A DNA stretch of 64,000 nucleotides from Tetramitus jugosus (lineage: Eukaryota; Protista; Heterolobosea): contig OW569383.1 of the NCBI GenBank assembly GCA_937625935.1, forward strand, positions 186,001 through 250,000. Direction: 5' to 3'. Every line of letters begins with the position of its first letter. The first letter of the stretch is position 1. Made by a program: the position numbers and the translations under genes. Below the pieces are notes generated by a model that saw only the letters and a program-made list of their open reading frames with translations, did no database searches and was not told the DNA's origin. Shown here piece by piece: positions 3,123-8,743 of this stretch.

Positions 3123-4168
3123 TTAGGCAAGTTTGACCTTCTTGAGCGCCTGTGGAGACTGCTCAACAGCCATTCCTTGCATCTGAGCACTGCTCAGCGT
3201 TCTCTTTATTAAGTGTTGTGCCTCATTGTTTGCTGTTGCATCTAGAAGCTCAGATTGCTCCTCTCCCGTTGCAACCAACGACGTCTGCTGTTGTTGTTGT
3301 TGCAACTGCAGTTGCTTCTCTTCCATCCGTTTCCTTAGCTCTCCATACGTATCCACTTCCATGTCATAAATAAGCTTGTCCACATGCAATTGGATCTCAT
3401 TCGAGTATGGTGGCCTTGTGCTCTGCTGTATCATCTCTTCTTGAGCAATTCTCCTCTCTTGTTCCCGCTTTTGTTTTTGCTGTAGAGCTTCCTCTGCCGC
3501 CATCGCCGTTTCTTGCTCTTCAAAATTCCAATAATATTGGCCAGTGGTTGACGAGTAGCGCACATTGGGCTGTAAATCATGAAACAACTCATTCATCGAG
3601 TACAGTACGTTGTATAAACGAGCTGAAACTACACTTTGATAGAGTGGAGCTTGAAAAACAAGACCACCCAGTATGTAATAACAATTGGTTGTTGTTACGC
3701 GTCCCTTGTCCACCTTTTCCTTCCGTATCACAAACAAATCAGGTTCATTGGCATAGTGAAGCTTGTATCGCACACCATCTTTGCTTTCGAGCAGTGCAGC
3801 ATCCATTTTTTGCATCTTGATTTGTTCATTGTTGCTCGTTCGATCATAGAATGGATTTCTAATGTTACAAAAGTAGGCCAGAGCAGTGTCTTCTCTCAAC
3901 ACGCCTCCATAGTACTATATATATATGTGTGTATGTGTATGTATGTGTGTGTTGTTGGAAGAAGAATCAATCAATAACAACCATATAACAAAGAACAAAA
4001 TTTGTTCATGTTTGTTAGCTCTTGCTAAGCTCATAGAATACTAGAATACTGACGAACAAAGCACAATTGATATCAACTTACCCTGAGCCATTCATCATCT
4101 CGAAATGTGATGATTGCTAGTTTCTTGATTTGCTTGGCACGGTTGAGCTTTGCTTGATGATCGTCCAT
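3123..4168 (-). CDS. MED6: Mediator subunit Med6; exons 4168-4082 and 3914-3123 (292 aa)
   Basis: FRDDEWLR|YYGG...LAYF..NPFYDRTSNNE, LFVIRK, YYILGGLVFQAP..SVVSARL; intron 3915-4081 GTAAGT...ATAG joins in frame. Confidence 0.9.
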
Positions 4169-4298
4169 TTGTGTTGTTTGCTTTTTTTTCGAACACCACA
4201 AATGAAAAGTGTGAAGTTTGAGATCAAGCTGTGAGTGGAATTTCTGAAGAAATCGGTTCATCATATGGATTTGGTGTACTTTATTAGAATTATGAAAT

Positions 4299-7200
4299 CT
4301 AGAGTCTCAAGTCTCTGACTTCAGCAATGATTTGTTGTGCGTTCTGCAAAACAACCAACATCTTGGCAGTTGCCTTTCTCTTGGCTGCAACTGCGTCATT
4401 CTCTCTCAACAATTCCTCAAACAGATCTTCCTTGTACAAATGTCTGACCAGTTCGCTTTGCAAATCAGCCTTACTCTTGTTGACCAAGAAACACATGACA
4501 GCCTTTGGCACGCTATCACTGATGCTCTTTCTGACAATGTTGAAATATTCCTTGAGCAGAGCTCTAATGATATCACTTTCTCTCTTCTCACGATCAGTGG
4601 CAGCATTTTGATAAGAGTTGTAATCCTAAGGTCATAATAACAAACAAAAAAGAACAAGGGTTAGCACTCATCGTCAGTACTGAAAAAAACATAACAGAAG
4701 AGAGGAGGTCATGAGAAATGCGCAAGCTTCTTCTGCCTGCTCACTGTGAAGGTATGTATCACATATCGATATCTACCGTTATCTGTGGAATATTGCCCAA
4801 TGTGTTGTACTGGTGGCTGTTATCGTATTGCTCTTGATACACTGGTTGCTGTTGCACAACAACAGGTTCAGGTTCAGGCGCAGGTGTGGCATTCTTTGCG
4901 TTTGGTTGGCTGTATGTATATGAGTATGGGTCTTCGTTTTGTACACCTTTGTGTGGATTACTCTCCTCCTCATCCTCCAAGTCGTCCAATTCCTTTCTTC
5001 CACCAAAGAAGTTTGATAGGAAAGATTGCTTTGGAGGAGGACGACGAGCAGCAGGTGGAGTAGAGGTATTCACAGTGGGTTTGGTTGGAAGATTTGCTGT
5101 TGGAGTAGTCTTTGATGGTTGCTTTGGTTGTGTCTTGGAAACATTGAACCATTCATCTTCTTCCTTTGGCTAATATATACATACATCACACACCACGGAC
5201 ACAGACACATACGTACACACACACACACACGTCAGTAATTGCACATTGCAACCACAGAGGGAGGATAACCATGTAAATCAATCGATGGTGAGCATTCAAA
5301 CTGAGACCAAAATAATGTGTGAACTACTCTTATTAAATGCTCGGGGAATCAACCCTAAACTCATCGTTTGCTCATAATATGTTTCCTCCCTCTTCAAGTC
5401 GCAATGATGAATCACTAATCACGACGCGAGCACACCGATACACCATATGAAGCCAGCAGATAACGATTTTTTGCGACATAGAACACACAGACTCAAGAAG
5501 AATGCTGCCATGCGCTCATTTGCTCATGATATCTCCTCCCTCTTCACAAAATAAAAAAAGTTGTGTAACAACTGTAAAAGGAAACATACCTTGTTGATTG
5601 GTTGAAGGTGAGGTTGTGGTTGTTGCTGTTGTTGTGGAATTGGTGGTTGTCTTCCTTGTTGCATTGGTTGTTGTGGTTGTTGTTGCATTTGCTGTGCTGG
5701 TTGCTCAGCTTGGTTGATGAGCATGAATGCACTTTGTCCACCGTTGAAGAAATCTGGATGATTCGTGTTAATGTATGCCATTTCGATCTGAATCAAATTC
5801 ACAATAAAGGTCTTCAATGGTTGTTGGTATTCTCTCAACAGAGTAATCACAAATTCCTTTGTTCTGTCCTTCAAGTTAGGGAATCTAGTCAATCCCTTCT
5901 CACAGTGCTCAACAACAGTTGCCAACTCTTCAAACACTTGATCAACACATCTGATGGCTGGTTCTTCCAATTGCTTCACTTGTCTCTTGACCAACATTTC
6001 GAATGCAGCTTCAGGGATGAACAGAGATGTTCTTGGACCCTTTGCGTTACGGATGGCAGTACGAATATCAGACTCATTCAAATTCTCACAGCTGTCCATC
6101 TTTAACAAGAATGGCAAGAATTTCTTTGTGAAGATGTGATTGATTCTGGCACCACCAAACAAGTCATTTGTGGTCAAGTCCACATTTCTACCTTCGATGG
6201 ACTCGTTGTAATCAGTGGAGAACTTGGTCAACAATTGGAGCAAGAGAGCACCGTTAGACATGTTGGATTCGGAGACTGGAACACCGTATTCGCCCAATCT
6301 TTGCTGTGCTTGTTGAATCAGTGCAGAAATTTTGGTTCTAATCTCTGGCAACACCTCACGAATGTGATTCAACAGAATGGTGTTCAGTGTCTTTGCCAAG
6401 TAGCGAGTACCCATGCGCTCAGCCATTGATTTGTAAGCAGGGTGCTTTTGGAAGAAGAGCGCTTCGTCCTTTACAGCTTCTCTGATACTCTTGTTGCTGT
6501 TAATGTCGCTTTGACCACGATTGACAACACCAATGAACCCTCTCTTCAATGGAATGACCTTGCCAGACAAAACATCAACGGCGTCAGTGCCTCTGTCCAT
6601 GAGATCCAACTTTGTCAAGACACCCAATGTTCTGTCACCTCTCTTGTCAACCTCAGCGGCCAACTTGAGAGCATCACTGTTGGCCAAATCAGTGTTGGCT
6701 GCAGTCACAGCCAAAATGATACAGTTTGGTTTGCTAATGTACTGAAGAATCATGTTTCTGATTTGATTCTCAATGTCTCTCGGTTGATCACCAACAGGAA
6801 CCTTGGTAATACCAGGCAAATCGATCAAGGTCAAATTCAAAACGTGTGGAGAGTAAATCTTCAAGTGAATTGGCAATGGTGAAATACCCTTGTTCTTACC
6901 AGTCAATCGATCAGTTTCATTGTTGATTTCTTGACGAAGTTGATCAAAATCAAATATCTTCTTGTTAGGCATGTGCAAAAACTCTCCCCATTCCTCATTG
7001 TTGTTCTCACTCTTTTGTTGAGCTTGTTCATCTGAAGCAGTCGCATTTTGATTCTTTGGTGTGTGAATCAATTGGAGCACAAGAGGTCTTCTCGTCACAA
7101 TACCTGTTCCTCTTGGTAGAAAATCTCTACCCACAATGTTTTCGAGCACAGAGCTTTTACCTGTTTTTACAAAAATTGTGGTTTTTGCGCCAAAAAAAAG

Positions 7201-7422
7201 TGATCAAAAAAAATGTCAGCAAGTCGAAAAAAAAGAATATTGGTAAGTTGAGTGTTCGTAATCAATTTTTTTGTCATGGCAAACTAGAAAGAAGTGATAT
7301 TGATGCATACCTGAAGATTGACTTCCAACAACGGCAATTTGTGGCAAGTCAATGGTATCTAGCATTCCTACAGAGTGAAACACATCTTGTAGTTTATTGA
7401 TGATTGGGATGAGCCGTTCCAT
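4299..7422 (-). CDS. Dynamin-related GTPase, Drp1/Dnm1/Vps1 class; exons 7422-7311, 7160-5590, 5169-4777, 4625-4299 (800 aa)
   Basis: [13 protein letters not shown]|[29 protein letters not shown], middle domain, insert B with [12 protein letters not shown] ([23 protein letters not shown]); introns 7161-7310, 5170-5589 and 4626-4776 all join in frame. Confidence 0.93.
4697..5546 (-). repeat. Intronic direct and inverted repeat system: A1 5496-5546, A2 5333-5396, B1 5256-5300, B2 4697-4734
   Basis: A1 and A2 share TGAAGAGGGAGGA..AT..ATGAGCAAA on the transcript strand; B1 and B2 are complementary to them. Confidence 0.85.
5190..5230 (+). repeat. CA-rich microsatellite near the 3' end of dynamin intron 2 (UG repeats in the pre-mRNA)
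   Basis: acacaccacggacacagacacatacgtacacacacacacacac. Confidence 0.7.
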
Positions 7423-7723
7423 TGTTTTCTTTTTAAGTTAATTGATATAATTACAGTTGTTGTCGTTTTGTTGTTTGTTGTTTTTCTTTCAACTTTCGAA
7501 GCTTTTTTTGTTTTGGGGTTTTCTGCTCTCTAGATCCCCTTTGGTCATTCTCCCGACGGCGAAGTTGGATTCCTCAACTTCTGTTCGAGAACGAAAGTGG
7601 AATCGGGGTTTTGGGGAATCATACAACGCCCAACCGACACCACCAATACAAGAATACCACCAATTTTCCTCAACTACAGAAGAATTTGTTCACAACACTG
7701 GTTTTCACAACAAAAAGTTTCGA

Positions 7724-8743
7724 ATGTCGTTAGATTCTGGAGACAAGGAAGGAGACATTAAATTTCGTATTGCCCATGCCGAAGCTTTCTGGATCGTCAT
7801 GAAAATATTGAATGACTTTTGTGAGATTGTAAATTTTGAGTTTAGTAAAGAAGGTCTCAATATTGTAGCAACAGACAGTACGTTGTTTTCTCCAAATGGA
7901 ATTTTTTGTATTCTTCAACACGCAACAACGATTGATACACTAACAACAAAGTCAGCTTCCAACGTCGTTTTGTTCAAACTTTTTCTATCCAGTAGTCACT
8001 GTCTTGTTTTTCAAACGAAAAAGCTCCAAAAGACTGTGACCGTTGGAGTGAACTTAAAGTTGTTGTGCAGTGGGCTCCAAAGTTGCAAGAAGGATTATGA
8101 GTTGTACCTGATCATCAATCCCAGTGAAGATCGTCTGACACTCTACTCACGCAAAAGCACAAGAGAGTTGTATTACAAGATATCTCAATTCCTAGTTCTA
8201 GATCAAGAAAAGTACGACATTGAGCAAGAGATGGACTATGAGGTTGAGATTCTCATGTCCAGTCGAGCACTGAGTGATGTGATAATTGATGTGAAATGTG
8301 TCAAGGCAGATGCCATCTCCGTTGCAGTGGTCCAAGAAGACGACTCAAACCGTGAGAAACAACAAGCAAGCTTAATTTGGGAAACAAGCTCCTCACTTCA
8401 AACAGTTCGAGCTCATATTGCAATCGGAGGACAAGACAGTGCACTGAACTGGAAGACGTCTGAGAGCCAAACAAGAGCCAACAACAAGAGAAGTATTGAA
8501 AACAGTTATTCCATGCGTGCCATAGACACGTTGACAAGAACAAGCAAGATTAGTGAGACAGTGTTGATTCAAATCGGTGAGTCGAAGCCTCTGTCATTCA
8601 CCTTCAAATTGGATCAAAATGTGGGCTTTTTCCAATTCTTTGTTGCGCCCTACGTCACAGATGACGATCTAGAGGAAGAGGAGGAGGAGGATGAAGACAT
8701 GCCATCTCTCACTTCAGCTTCATCATCATCATCATCATTATAA
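7724..8743 (+). CDS. Divergent PCNA-family sliding clamp; exons 7724-7877 and 7956-8743 (313 aa), acidic tail
   Basis: After removing the 78-nt intron (GTACGT..CTAAC..TCAG): EGLNIVATDTSNVVLFKL ~ PCNA GVNLQSMDSSHVSLVQL; GVNLKLL; KPLSFTFKLDQNVGFFQFFVAP ~ [21 protein letters not shown]. Confidence 0.8.
   Translation: MSLDSGDKEGDIKFRIAHAEAFWIVMKILNDFCEIVNFEFSKEGLNIVATDSTLFSPNGIFCILQHATTIDTLTTKSASNVVLFKLFLSSSHCLVFQTKKLQKTVTVGVNLKLLCSGLQSCKKDYELYLIINPSEDRLTLYSRKSTRELYYKISQFLVLDQEKYDIEQEMDYEVEILMSSRALSDVIIDVKCVKADAISVAVVQEDDSNREKQQASLIWETSSSLQTVRAHIAIGGQDSALNWKTSESQTRANNKRSIENSYSMRAIDTLTRTSKISETVLIQIGESKPLSFTFKLDQNVGFFQFFVAPYVTDDDLEEEEEEDEDMPSLTSASSSSSSL

Follow-up and report, generated by a model that had tools for sequence, protein, structure and literature searches.

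A predicted long-range intron–intron helix and the skipping of a conserved in-frame exon in the Drp1/Dnm1-type dynamin gene of Tetramitus jugosus

Results

Exon 3 of the dynamin gene is a mostly skipped cassette exon

We analyzed a stretch of 64,000 nucleotides (nt) from the heterolobosean Tetramitus jugosus (GenBank assembly GCA_937625935.1, contig OW569383.1, positions 186,001 to 250,000 of the forward strand), hereafter the window, which carries on its minus strand, at 4299-7464, a single-copy gene encoding a dynamin-related protein of the Drp1/Dnm1 type. We found that exon 3 of this gene is a true frame-preserving cassette exon, since the skip and inclusion junctions both occur in RNA; skipping is the major form and inclusion the minor one. 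Our interpretation, which is of moderate confidence, is that the skipping is probably caused by a helix predicted to form across the exon between element A1 of intron 2 and element B2 of intron 3.

RNA contigs from three runs, belonging to three studies, were placed on positions 4100-7600; two of the runs are soil metatranscriptomes (X1 and X2) and the other is an oligo-dT library (X7). The junction 5590->4625, predicted in a preliminary description of the window made from its letters, removes 4626-5589 (964 nt, GT..AG) and was present in all three runs, with depths of 162 in X1 (in a 2094-nt contig joining exons 1-2-4), 75 in X2, and 33 in X7 (1516-nt contig). The exon enclosed by the complementary introns is thus skipped in RNA in three runs of three studies, as exon looping-out presupposes. 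The joints expected from inclusion were also detected, 4777/4625 in X2 (depth 20) and X7 (9), and 5590/5169 in X2 (20). Judged by rough contig depth, exon 3 is present in about one eighth to one fifth of the transcripts, a share that was similar across the three runs. A fourth run, X15, showed an even depth across introns and behaves as DNA of another strain. A retrogene was rejected as the origin of the skip junction because the genome (26.35 Mb, 56 contigs) contains one copy only of exon 3 and of exon 4.

Intron 2 was the only intron with RNA coverage, contiguous with that of exon 3 (depth of 22.6 in X1 and 9.9 in X2), and contigs ran straight through it at 4776-5612 in X1 and at 5260-5618 in X2. 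Given that introns 1 and 3 had no depth, the intron-2-retaining species is specific and not a product of DNA contamination. Retention introduces a stop 21 codons into the intron, before the GTPase effector domain (GED) (open reading frame 5524-7149). The RNA contigs break at a (GU)n-like microsatellite located directly upstream of the intron-2 acceptor (5193-5240), whose length differs among strains (4-nt indel at 5227-5230).

A long helix is predicted between the introns that flank exon 3

Read on the minus strand, A1 (5546-5496) and B2 (4734-4697) can form 37 Watson-Crick pairs in 38 nt, with five bulges on A1, as described beforehand. The paired blocks (B2/A1) are AGAAGAA/UUCUUCU, GCU/AGC, UGCG/CGCA, CAUUU/AAAUG, CUCAUGA/UCAUGAG, CCUCC/GGAGG, and CUCUUC/GAAGAG, and the duplex energy calculated with RNAduplex was −43.6 kcal/mol. 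This value was matched by none of 500 dinucleotide shuffles of B2 tested against intron 2 (mean −25.7, sd 3.3, best −38.0), and the best of 600 natural 38-mers included as a control reached −34.8. When the locus was compared with 200 geometry-matched natural segment pairs of the window (mean −29.3, best −39.5), none of them attained the −46.1 that the same procedure gave for the locus. The complementarity of the flanking introns is thus above chance with respect to both the shuffles and the natural pairs.

The inverted repeat is longer than previously recognized, spanning approximately 125 nt instead of 38, owing to an imperfect extension with which 5546-5420 would pair with 4827-4697. The local alignment of this repeat scored 48, against a maximum of 33 for shuffles. 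The whole extended helix has a calculated energy of −96.4 kcal/mol, and the extension alone −53.8 kcal/mol, a value that five of 500 shuffles reached and that no natural pair, out of 500, attained. Within the extension, AUCGUUAUCUG (5467-5457) is predicted to pair with CAGAUAACGGU, which consists of the nine bases that end exon 3 plus the donor GU.

Intron 2 carries two additional elements, A2 and B1. B1 can also pair with A1, at −35.6 kcal/mol versus −43.6 for A1-B2. In a partition-function fold of 1024 nt, the A1/B2 pairs summed to a probability of 34.4 (about 0.9 each) and those of A2-B1 to 17. Folding of the 964-nt composite intron, the check proposed in the preliminary description, yielded A1-B2 and A2-B1 in both the minimum free energy (MFE) structure and the centroid, with a z of −4.1. 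According to the partition-function model, the two pairings are nested and would coexist rather than exclude each other.

A second inverted pair had been noted beside the splice sites of the exon. It is present (5190-5177 with 4759-4745, 8 + 5 bp), but it is a GU/AC-rich sequence of low complexity with alternative partners, and it drops out of the predicted fold, in which 4756-4768 is joined to 5486-5474. In the same region, the 12-nt stretch of intron 3 at 4749-4760 (GAUACAUACCUU), which resembles the 5′ end of U1 snRNA, could pair at 11 of its 12 positions with the exon-2/intron-2 donor at 5581-5592 (AAGGUAUGUUUC), a complementarity that may well be due to chance among 57 short inverted pairs.

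The position of the arms also fits that of a zipper stem. From 5589 to A1 there are 43-46 nt, and from B2 to the A of the candidate branch sites TACTGAC (4674) or TGCTAAC (4661) there are 22 or 35 nt, giving a total linker of 65-81 nt; these two sites of intron 3, as well as TACTGAC at 5237-5231 in intron 2, are candidates read from the sequence only. A search of 4400-5800 against Rfam for known RNA families or an intronic snoRNA gave no match at E<=1. A transposon, dispersed repeat, or miniature inverted-repeat transposable element was considered and rejected, given that searching the 26.35 Mb genome by DNA sequence and by pattern found A1/A2, B2, and their shared motif only at this locus.

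Pairing across the exon recurs in relatives with different sequences

Pairing between the sequences that bracket the exon was significant in five of the seven complete loci (four of six lineages), in every case with different sequences. In L011, CAUAUCAAGUAUCUUCGUGC lies 57 nt inside intron 2 and pairs with GCCGAAGAACUUGAUAUG, located 13 nt inside intron 3 (−34.8, z −4.9, 1/100); as controls, the reversed and the reverse-complement sequences gave −22.9 and −25.5, respectively. In L014, a perfect 17-bp pairing, GUAGCGUGUGCGUGCGU/ACGCACGCACACGCUAC, links the start of intron 2 with the bases directly after the exon-3 donor (−41.5, z −3.7, 1/100). The corresponding value for its congener L022 was −38.0 (z −3.4, 2/500; reversed control −27.5). 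Between these two loci, GUGUG/CACAC of L014 is replaced by GUGUAUG/CAUACAC in L022, a change on both arms of which this is the one case, and the cognate arms (−41.5 and −38.0) pair better than the swapped ones (−27.9 and −35.8).

In Naegleria fowleri (L006), 40 nt of the intron that precedes the insert-B exons (4931-4970) pair with the 30 nt that end the second insert-B exon, immediately before its donor. The energy was −28.1, not reached by any of 1000 shuffles, and this was the sole strong cell (z −6.1; the next was −3.0) when every intron of that gene was set against every exon end in a matrix. A weaker pairing (z −3.0) was observed in the same gene between 4629-4720 and 5242-5271, that is, between the preceding intron and the terminal part of the first insert-B exon; these segments bracket two exons that together make 345 nt, in frame.

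The closest relatives, L009 and L010, were outside this comparison, as the contigs available for them do not include the 5′ portion of intron 2; intron 3 of L009 keeps a B2-like sequence, CATTTGCTCCTCTCAC. We also observed in intron 2 of several relatives (L004 3238-3330, L014 5493-5592, L011 3211-3290) an internal hairpin with a purine-rich and a pyrimidine-rich arm, analogous to A2-B1; examples of its arms are GGAGGAAAUAG/CUAUUUCCUCC, CGAGAGGA/UCCUCUCG, and GGUAUAGAAAGGU/ACCUUUCUAUUACC. The sequences compared suggest that, across lineages, the bracket arrangement is often kept whereas the arm sequences are not.

Exon 3 encodes a conserved insert with a Dnm1-like motif

The greater part of the disordered insert B comes from exon 3, and with it a Dnm1-like motif, (S/G)F(L/F)xNFFG. 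Homologous exons were found in genomic contigs L004, L005, L010, L011, L014, L015, L016, and L022, and in L006 of N. fowleri. The exon is kept in seven heterolobosean lineages, and its length is a multiple of three in all six loci with both ends. The lengths are 393, 294, 351, 267, 258, 336, and 291 nt, and the N. fowleri exon pair sums to 441, all of them divisible by three. These homologues translate without stops and have in common the motifs (D/E)(D/E)W(F/L)xV and (S/G)F(L/F)SNFFG; the position of intron 2 is common to all the relatives where it is readable. L017 had no counterpart of exon 3.

The motif SFLSNFFG lies at 5022-5002 (minus strand) of the window, with counterparts at 5756-5779 in L014 and 3508-3531 in L011. 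The FLxxFFG of exon 3 matches the four essential hydrophobic residues of F606-LNYFFG-K613 in Dnm1, the insert-B motif through which the yeast protein binds the adaptor Mdv1 and which was reported to be fungal-specific (PMC3494853). In BLASTP, the motif aligned with RDSFLNYFFG of insert B of a fungal Dnm1, in a short match (E 0.14). From its sequence, the exon-3 motif is likely an adaptor-binding motif. A search of the genome with the Mdv1 N-terminal Pfam family gave no match, nor did the control genomes, so this search is uninformative. With exon 3 as query, the protein search matched only a strain of the same species, and a metagenome scan with a second exon-3 alignment matched 600 pattern stretches, none of which was confirmed.

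The mRNA-type contigs of relatives (P0004, P0005, P0009, P0010, and L020) and the N. gruberi model run from the Q-rich tail to the GED without exon 3. L020 represents a sister species (88% identity) and was obtained, like L022, by scanning metagenomes with a GED alignment. P0004, which lacks the exon, is 90% identical to L014, and the genomes of L014 and three congeners carry it. Because the mRNA-type contigs of the relatives lack an exon that the genomes carry, the insert-less form seems to be the mRNA that members of the group usually make. The annotated N. fowleri protein (830 aa, L006) includes the insert-B exons and the N. gruberi model P0015 (688 aa) is devoid of them; this difference between annotations may reflect two isoforms rather than a difference between species.

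Gene structure and neighborhood

The homology searches were done exon by exon. Pfam assigned Dynamin_N (2.6e-48) and Dynamin_M (8.7e-108) to exon 2 and GED (8.6e-32) to exon 4, and gave no match for exon 3. In this layout insert B occupies the place where a PH domain could be, and Pfam detected no PH domain, which identifies a Drp1/Dnm1-type protein and agrees with the earlier designation as a Drp1-like dynamin. The nearest named relatives of the protein are those of N. fowleri (69% identity), Percolomonas (67%), and N. gruberi (64%), so that the description of the source as an intron-poor protist was roughly right for this heterolobosean. The earlier delimitation of exon 3 (5169-4777, 393 nt, open in phase 0/0, donor GTAGAT) was confirmed by the RNA junctions; by comparison with the donors of introns 1 and 2 (GTATGC and GTATGT), the exon-3 donor is weak. 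The features of the locus are collected in Table 1. The gene is flanked by a homologue of MED6 at 3123-3902 (minus strand, E 1.2e-28) and by a divergent PCNA-like open reading frame at 7457-8743 (plus strand; PCNA_C, E 1.6e-4, under the Pfam cut-off).

Table 1. Exons, introns, and predicted structural elements of the dynamin gene (window coordinates)
Feature	Position	Strand	Observations
Exon 1, coding part	7308..7422	(-)	ATG at 7422; RNA junction 7157/7308 in X1 and X2
Intron 1	7158-7307	(-)	Donor GTATGC
Exon 2 (GTPase and middle domains, Q-rich tail)	5590..7157	(-)	Ends at codon boundary, ..AAC AAG; Pfam; RNA contigs join 7157/7308 and 5590/4625
Intron 2, 420 nt, GTATGT..AG	5170..5589	(-)	Contains A1, A2, and B1; junction 5169/5590 in X2; partly retained together with exon 3
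A1, 5′ arm of the core helix	5496..5546	(-)	Starts 43-46 nt past the intron-2 5′ splice site; 37 bp with B2; predicted in MFE and centroid
Imperfect extension of the 5′ arm	5420..5495	(-)	5467-5453 predicted to pair with the last exon-3 bases and the donor GU; MFE helix runs to 5420/4827
A2, diverged direct copy of A1, 5′ arm of the intron-2 hairpin	5358..5405	(-)	Direct repeats; A2 x B1 −40.8 kcal/mol, z −7.1, 0/500 shuffles
B1, inverted partner of A2	5245..5290	(-)	End lies 24 nt upstream of the likely branch site of intron 2, TACTGAC (5237-5231)
Exon 3, 393-nt phase 0/0 cassette	4777..5169	(-)	Encodes the greater part of insert B, with DEWFNV and SFLSNFFG; both skipping and inclusion seen in RNA
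3′ end of exon 3 inside the extended helix	4777..4827	(-)	MFE pairs 5467-5420 with 4775-4827; 5′ splice site in predicted paired stretch
Intron 3, 151 nt, donor GTAGAT, acceptor AG	4626..4776	(-)	Junction 4777/4625 in X2 and X7
B2, 3′ arm of the core helix	4697..4734	(-)	End lies 22 nt upstream of TACTGAC (4679-4673) and 35 nt upstream of TGCTAAC (4666-4660)
Exon 4, GTPase effector domain	4302..4625	(-)	Pfam GED; directly joined to exon 2 in the major mRNA (X1, X2, X7)

Discussion

A structural model for the skipping of exon 3

We propose that the inverted repeat would fold into a long-range helix across exon 3, burying the weak GTAGAT donor of this exon and serving the composite 964-nt intron as its zipper stem. 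The 5′ splice site of intron 2 would in this way be brought within a linker of ~65-81 nt from the branch site of intron 3, and the spliceosome would pair the intron-2 donor with the intron-3 branch site, leaving exon 3 looped out. With the intron-2 donor presented to that branch site and the exon-3 donor hidden, excision of the 964 nt would be favored. The nested A2-B1 hairpin would tie up B1, the sole local partner by which A1 could zip intron 2 alone, A2 being predicted to bind B1 more strongly (−40.8) than A1 does (−35.6). Inclusion would take place when the splicing of intron 2 or of intron 3 precedes formation of the helix, in a kinetic competition during transcription, and the intron-2-retaining species would fit a slow removal of intron 2 after intron 3 has gone. 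We consider it plausible, and supported by the comparison among loci, that the skipping has a structural cause; three results favor a structural role, namely, the predicted dominance of the helix (~0.9), the zipper-stem geometry, and the analogous pairings, with different sequences, found in four other loci.

Several observations weigh against this model. The contig depths are rough. A long-range helix predicted in vitro may fail to form while transcription is under way, and the weak donor alone could explain the skipping. In the relatives, L015 and L016, both with short introns, showed no significant bracket pairing (z +1.0 and −1.1; in L016 a weak pairing involves the donor region, 3/100), and given that they keep exon 3, pairing is not required for its retention; the arm of L014 is of low complexity and its reversed control also reached −38.3. 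The four or five strains of the window species that were compared (L007, L008, X1, X2, and X15) have no change in A1 or B2, in a test that is underpowered (only ~15 events in 571 intronic nt, P ~0.1). Finally, the preliminary description had proposed a regulated switch; the inclusion share looks alike in all three RNA runs, so nothing points to such regulation.

The main alternative to a causal helix is that the inverted repeat was left behind, as a neutral relic, when a local duplication and inversion placed a copy of the exon-3/intron-3 junction in intron 2, with skipping resulting, independently of RNA structure, from the weak GTAGAT donor and a poor definition of exon 3. We regard this as rather unlikely, although it would account for A1, A2, B1, and B2 being all local copies of one sequence found nowhere else in the 26 Mb genome, and it agrees with the non-consensus exon-3 donors of several lineages (GTAGAT, GTGAAT, GTATAT, GTACAT, and GTTTGT), with the lack of significant pairing in L015 and L016, and with the strain polymorphism test, which was not significant. 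What it does not predict is that bracket pairings with unrelated sequences arose independently in four other loci, in N. fowleri only at this exon, that the cognate arms of L014 and L022 pair better than the swapped ones, or that the arms stand at zipper-stem distances with respect to both 5′ splice site and branch site; a neutral relic of such age should, moreover, have decayed like the rest of these fast-evolving introns.

Another possibility is that the structures chiefly slow the removal of intron 2, yielding a prematurely terminated retained transcript that tunes dynamin output, with exon choice being secondary. The strong predicted A2-B1 hairpin within this intron, its condition as the sole intron with RNA coverage, and the stop after 21 codons are in line with this idea; nevertheless, it appears improbable, since the retained form is minor beside the skip form, and the pairing with intron 3 and the conserved in-frame exon with its motif would be left unexplained. 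Inverted repeats also flank circular RNAs in animals (PMC8052449), and a circular RNA of exon 3 had been suggested; it could even be the main product, with linear skipping as a by-product. This we consider highly improbable: no backward joint (4777->5169) was present in the contigs of four runs, two of them not poly(A)-selected, though contigs may drop rare forms and cannot prove absence, and the extended helix would bury the exon-3 donor that back-splicing needs.

Significance

Apart from the cause of the skipping, the locus offers a cassette exon whose length phase and protein motif are maintained throughout a class of protists, with both isoforms in RNA and a strong structural candidate for the choice between them. 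The two dynamin isoforms may differ in adaptor binding or target organelle, by analogy with yeast, since exon 3 carries a motif that in that organism recruits Dnm1 to mitochondria. We advance only tentatively a wider possibility, namely, that throughout Heterolobosea one Drp1/Dnm1 gene provides two fission-dynamin classes via the RNA-structure-driven skipping of an ancient insert-B exon with a Dnm1-type motif, and that the helix, rebuilt from new sequences in each lineage, sets the isoform ratio kinetically. A ratio set in this manner during transcription could respond to temperature or to transcription speed, and if this reading is true, structure-guided exon skipping would predate animals.

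Comparison with known systems

Exon skipping outside animals is considered to be infrequent, not enriched for frame-preserving events, and for the most part non-functional (PMC6142364). Looping-out of exons by intronic complementarity lowers inclusion in Drosophila (PMC2724269) and in humans (PMC8052449). The T. jugosus locus resembles those cases in having complementary boxes in both introns around a cassette exon, a low inclusion, and pairing that abuts the splice sites. It differs in that the organism is a unicellular heterolobosean with few, short introns, in that the predicted helix is much longer (~95 bp overall) and takes in the donor of the exon itself, and in that skipping is the default and the arms turn over completely between lineages instead of being conserved in sequence. 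Looped-out-exon splicing of the animal kind thus seems to occur in a distant protist; the mechanism is known, while the lineage and the gene are new for it. If the helix is causal, it would show that RNA structure can take the place of the protein splicing regulators used by animals.

In yeast, stems within one intron promote its splicing, as in RPS17B and RPL7A/B (PMC2536676, PMC12311795, PMC12350175). The predicted helix is similar to these zipper stems in that it starts tens of nt past the 5′ splice site, ends ~20-35 nt before the branch site, and would shorten the effective intron; its linker of 65-81 nt fits the published window of 42-85 nt, and in both cases the structure recurs without sequence conservation. 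The natural yeast stem, however, lies in one intron and enforces inclusion, whereas the one described here extends over two introns together with an exon and would be expected to enforce skipping. Howe and Ares reportedly found in 1997 that an engineered pairing between the 5′ splice site region of intron 1 and the branch region of intron 2 increased exon skipping in yeast. If the T. jugosus helix is causal, it would be a natural counterpart, in Discoba, of that engineered cross-intron pairing.

The several copies of a box (A1, A2) and of its complement (B1, B2), with alternative pairings, recall the docking-selector systems of Dscam1 (PMC12962786) and ATE1 (PMC7797038). Unlike in those genes, there are no mutually exclusive exons here, and the best pairings are nested and coexisting; a docking/selector competition was therefore rejected for this single cassette exon, around which A1-B2 and A2-B1 are predicted to form together. 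At the protein level, mammalian Drp1 is alternatively spliced in its variable domain, or B-insert. The alternative exon of T. jugosus lies in the same disordered insert as the Drp1 B-insert and the insert B of Dnm1, between the middle domain and the GED, and carries the F-L-x-x-F-F-G signature.

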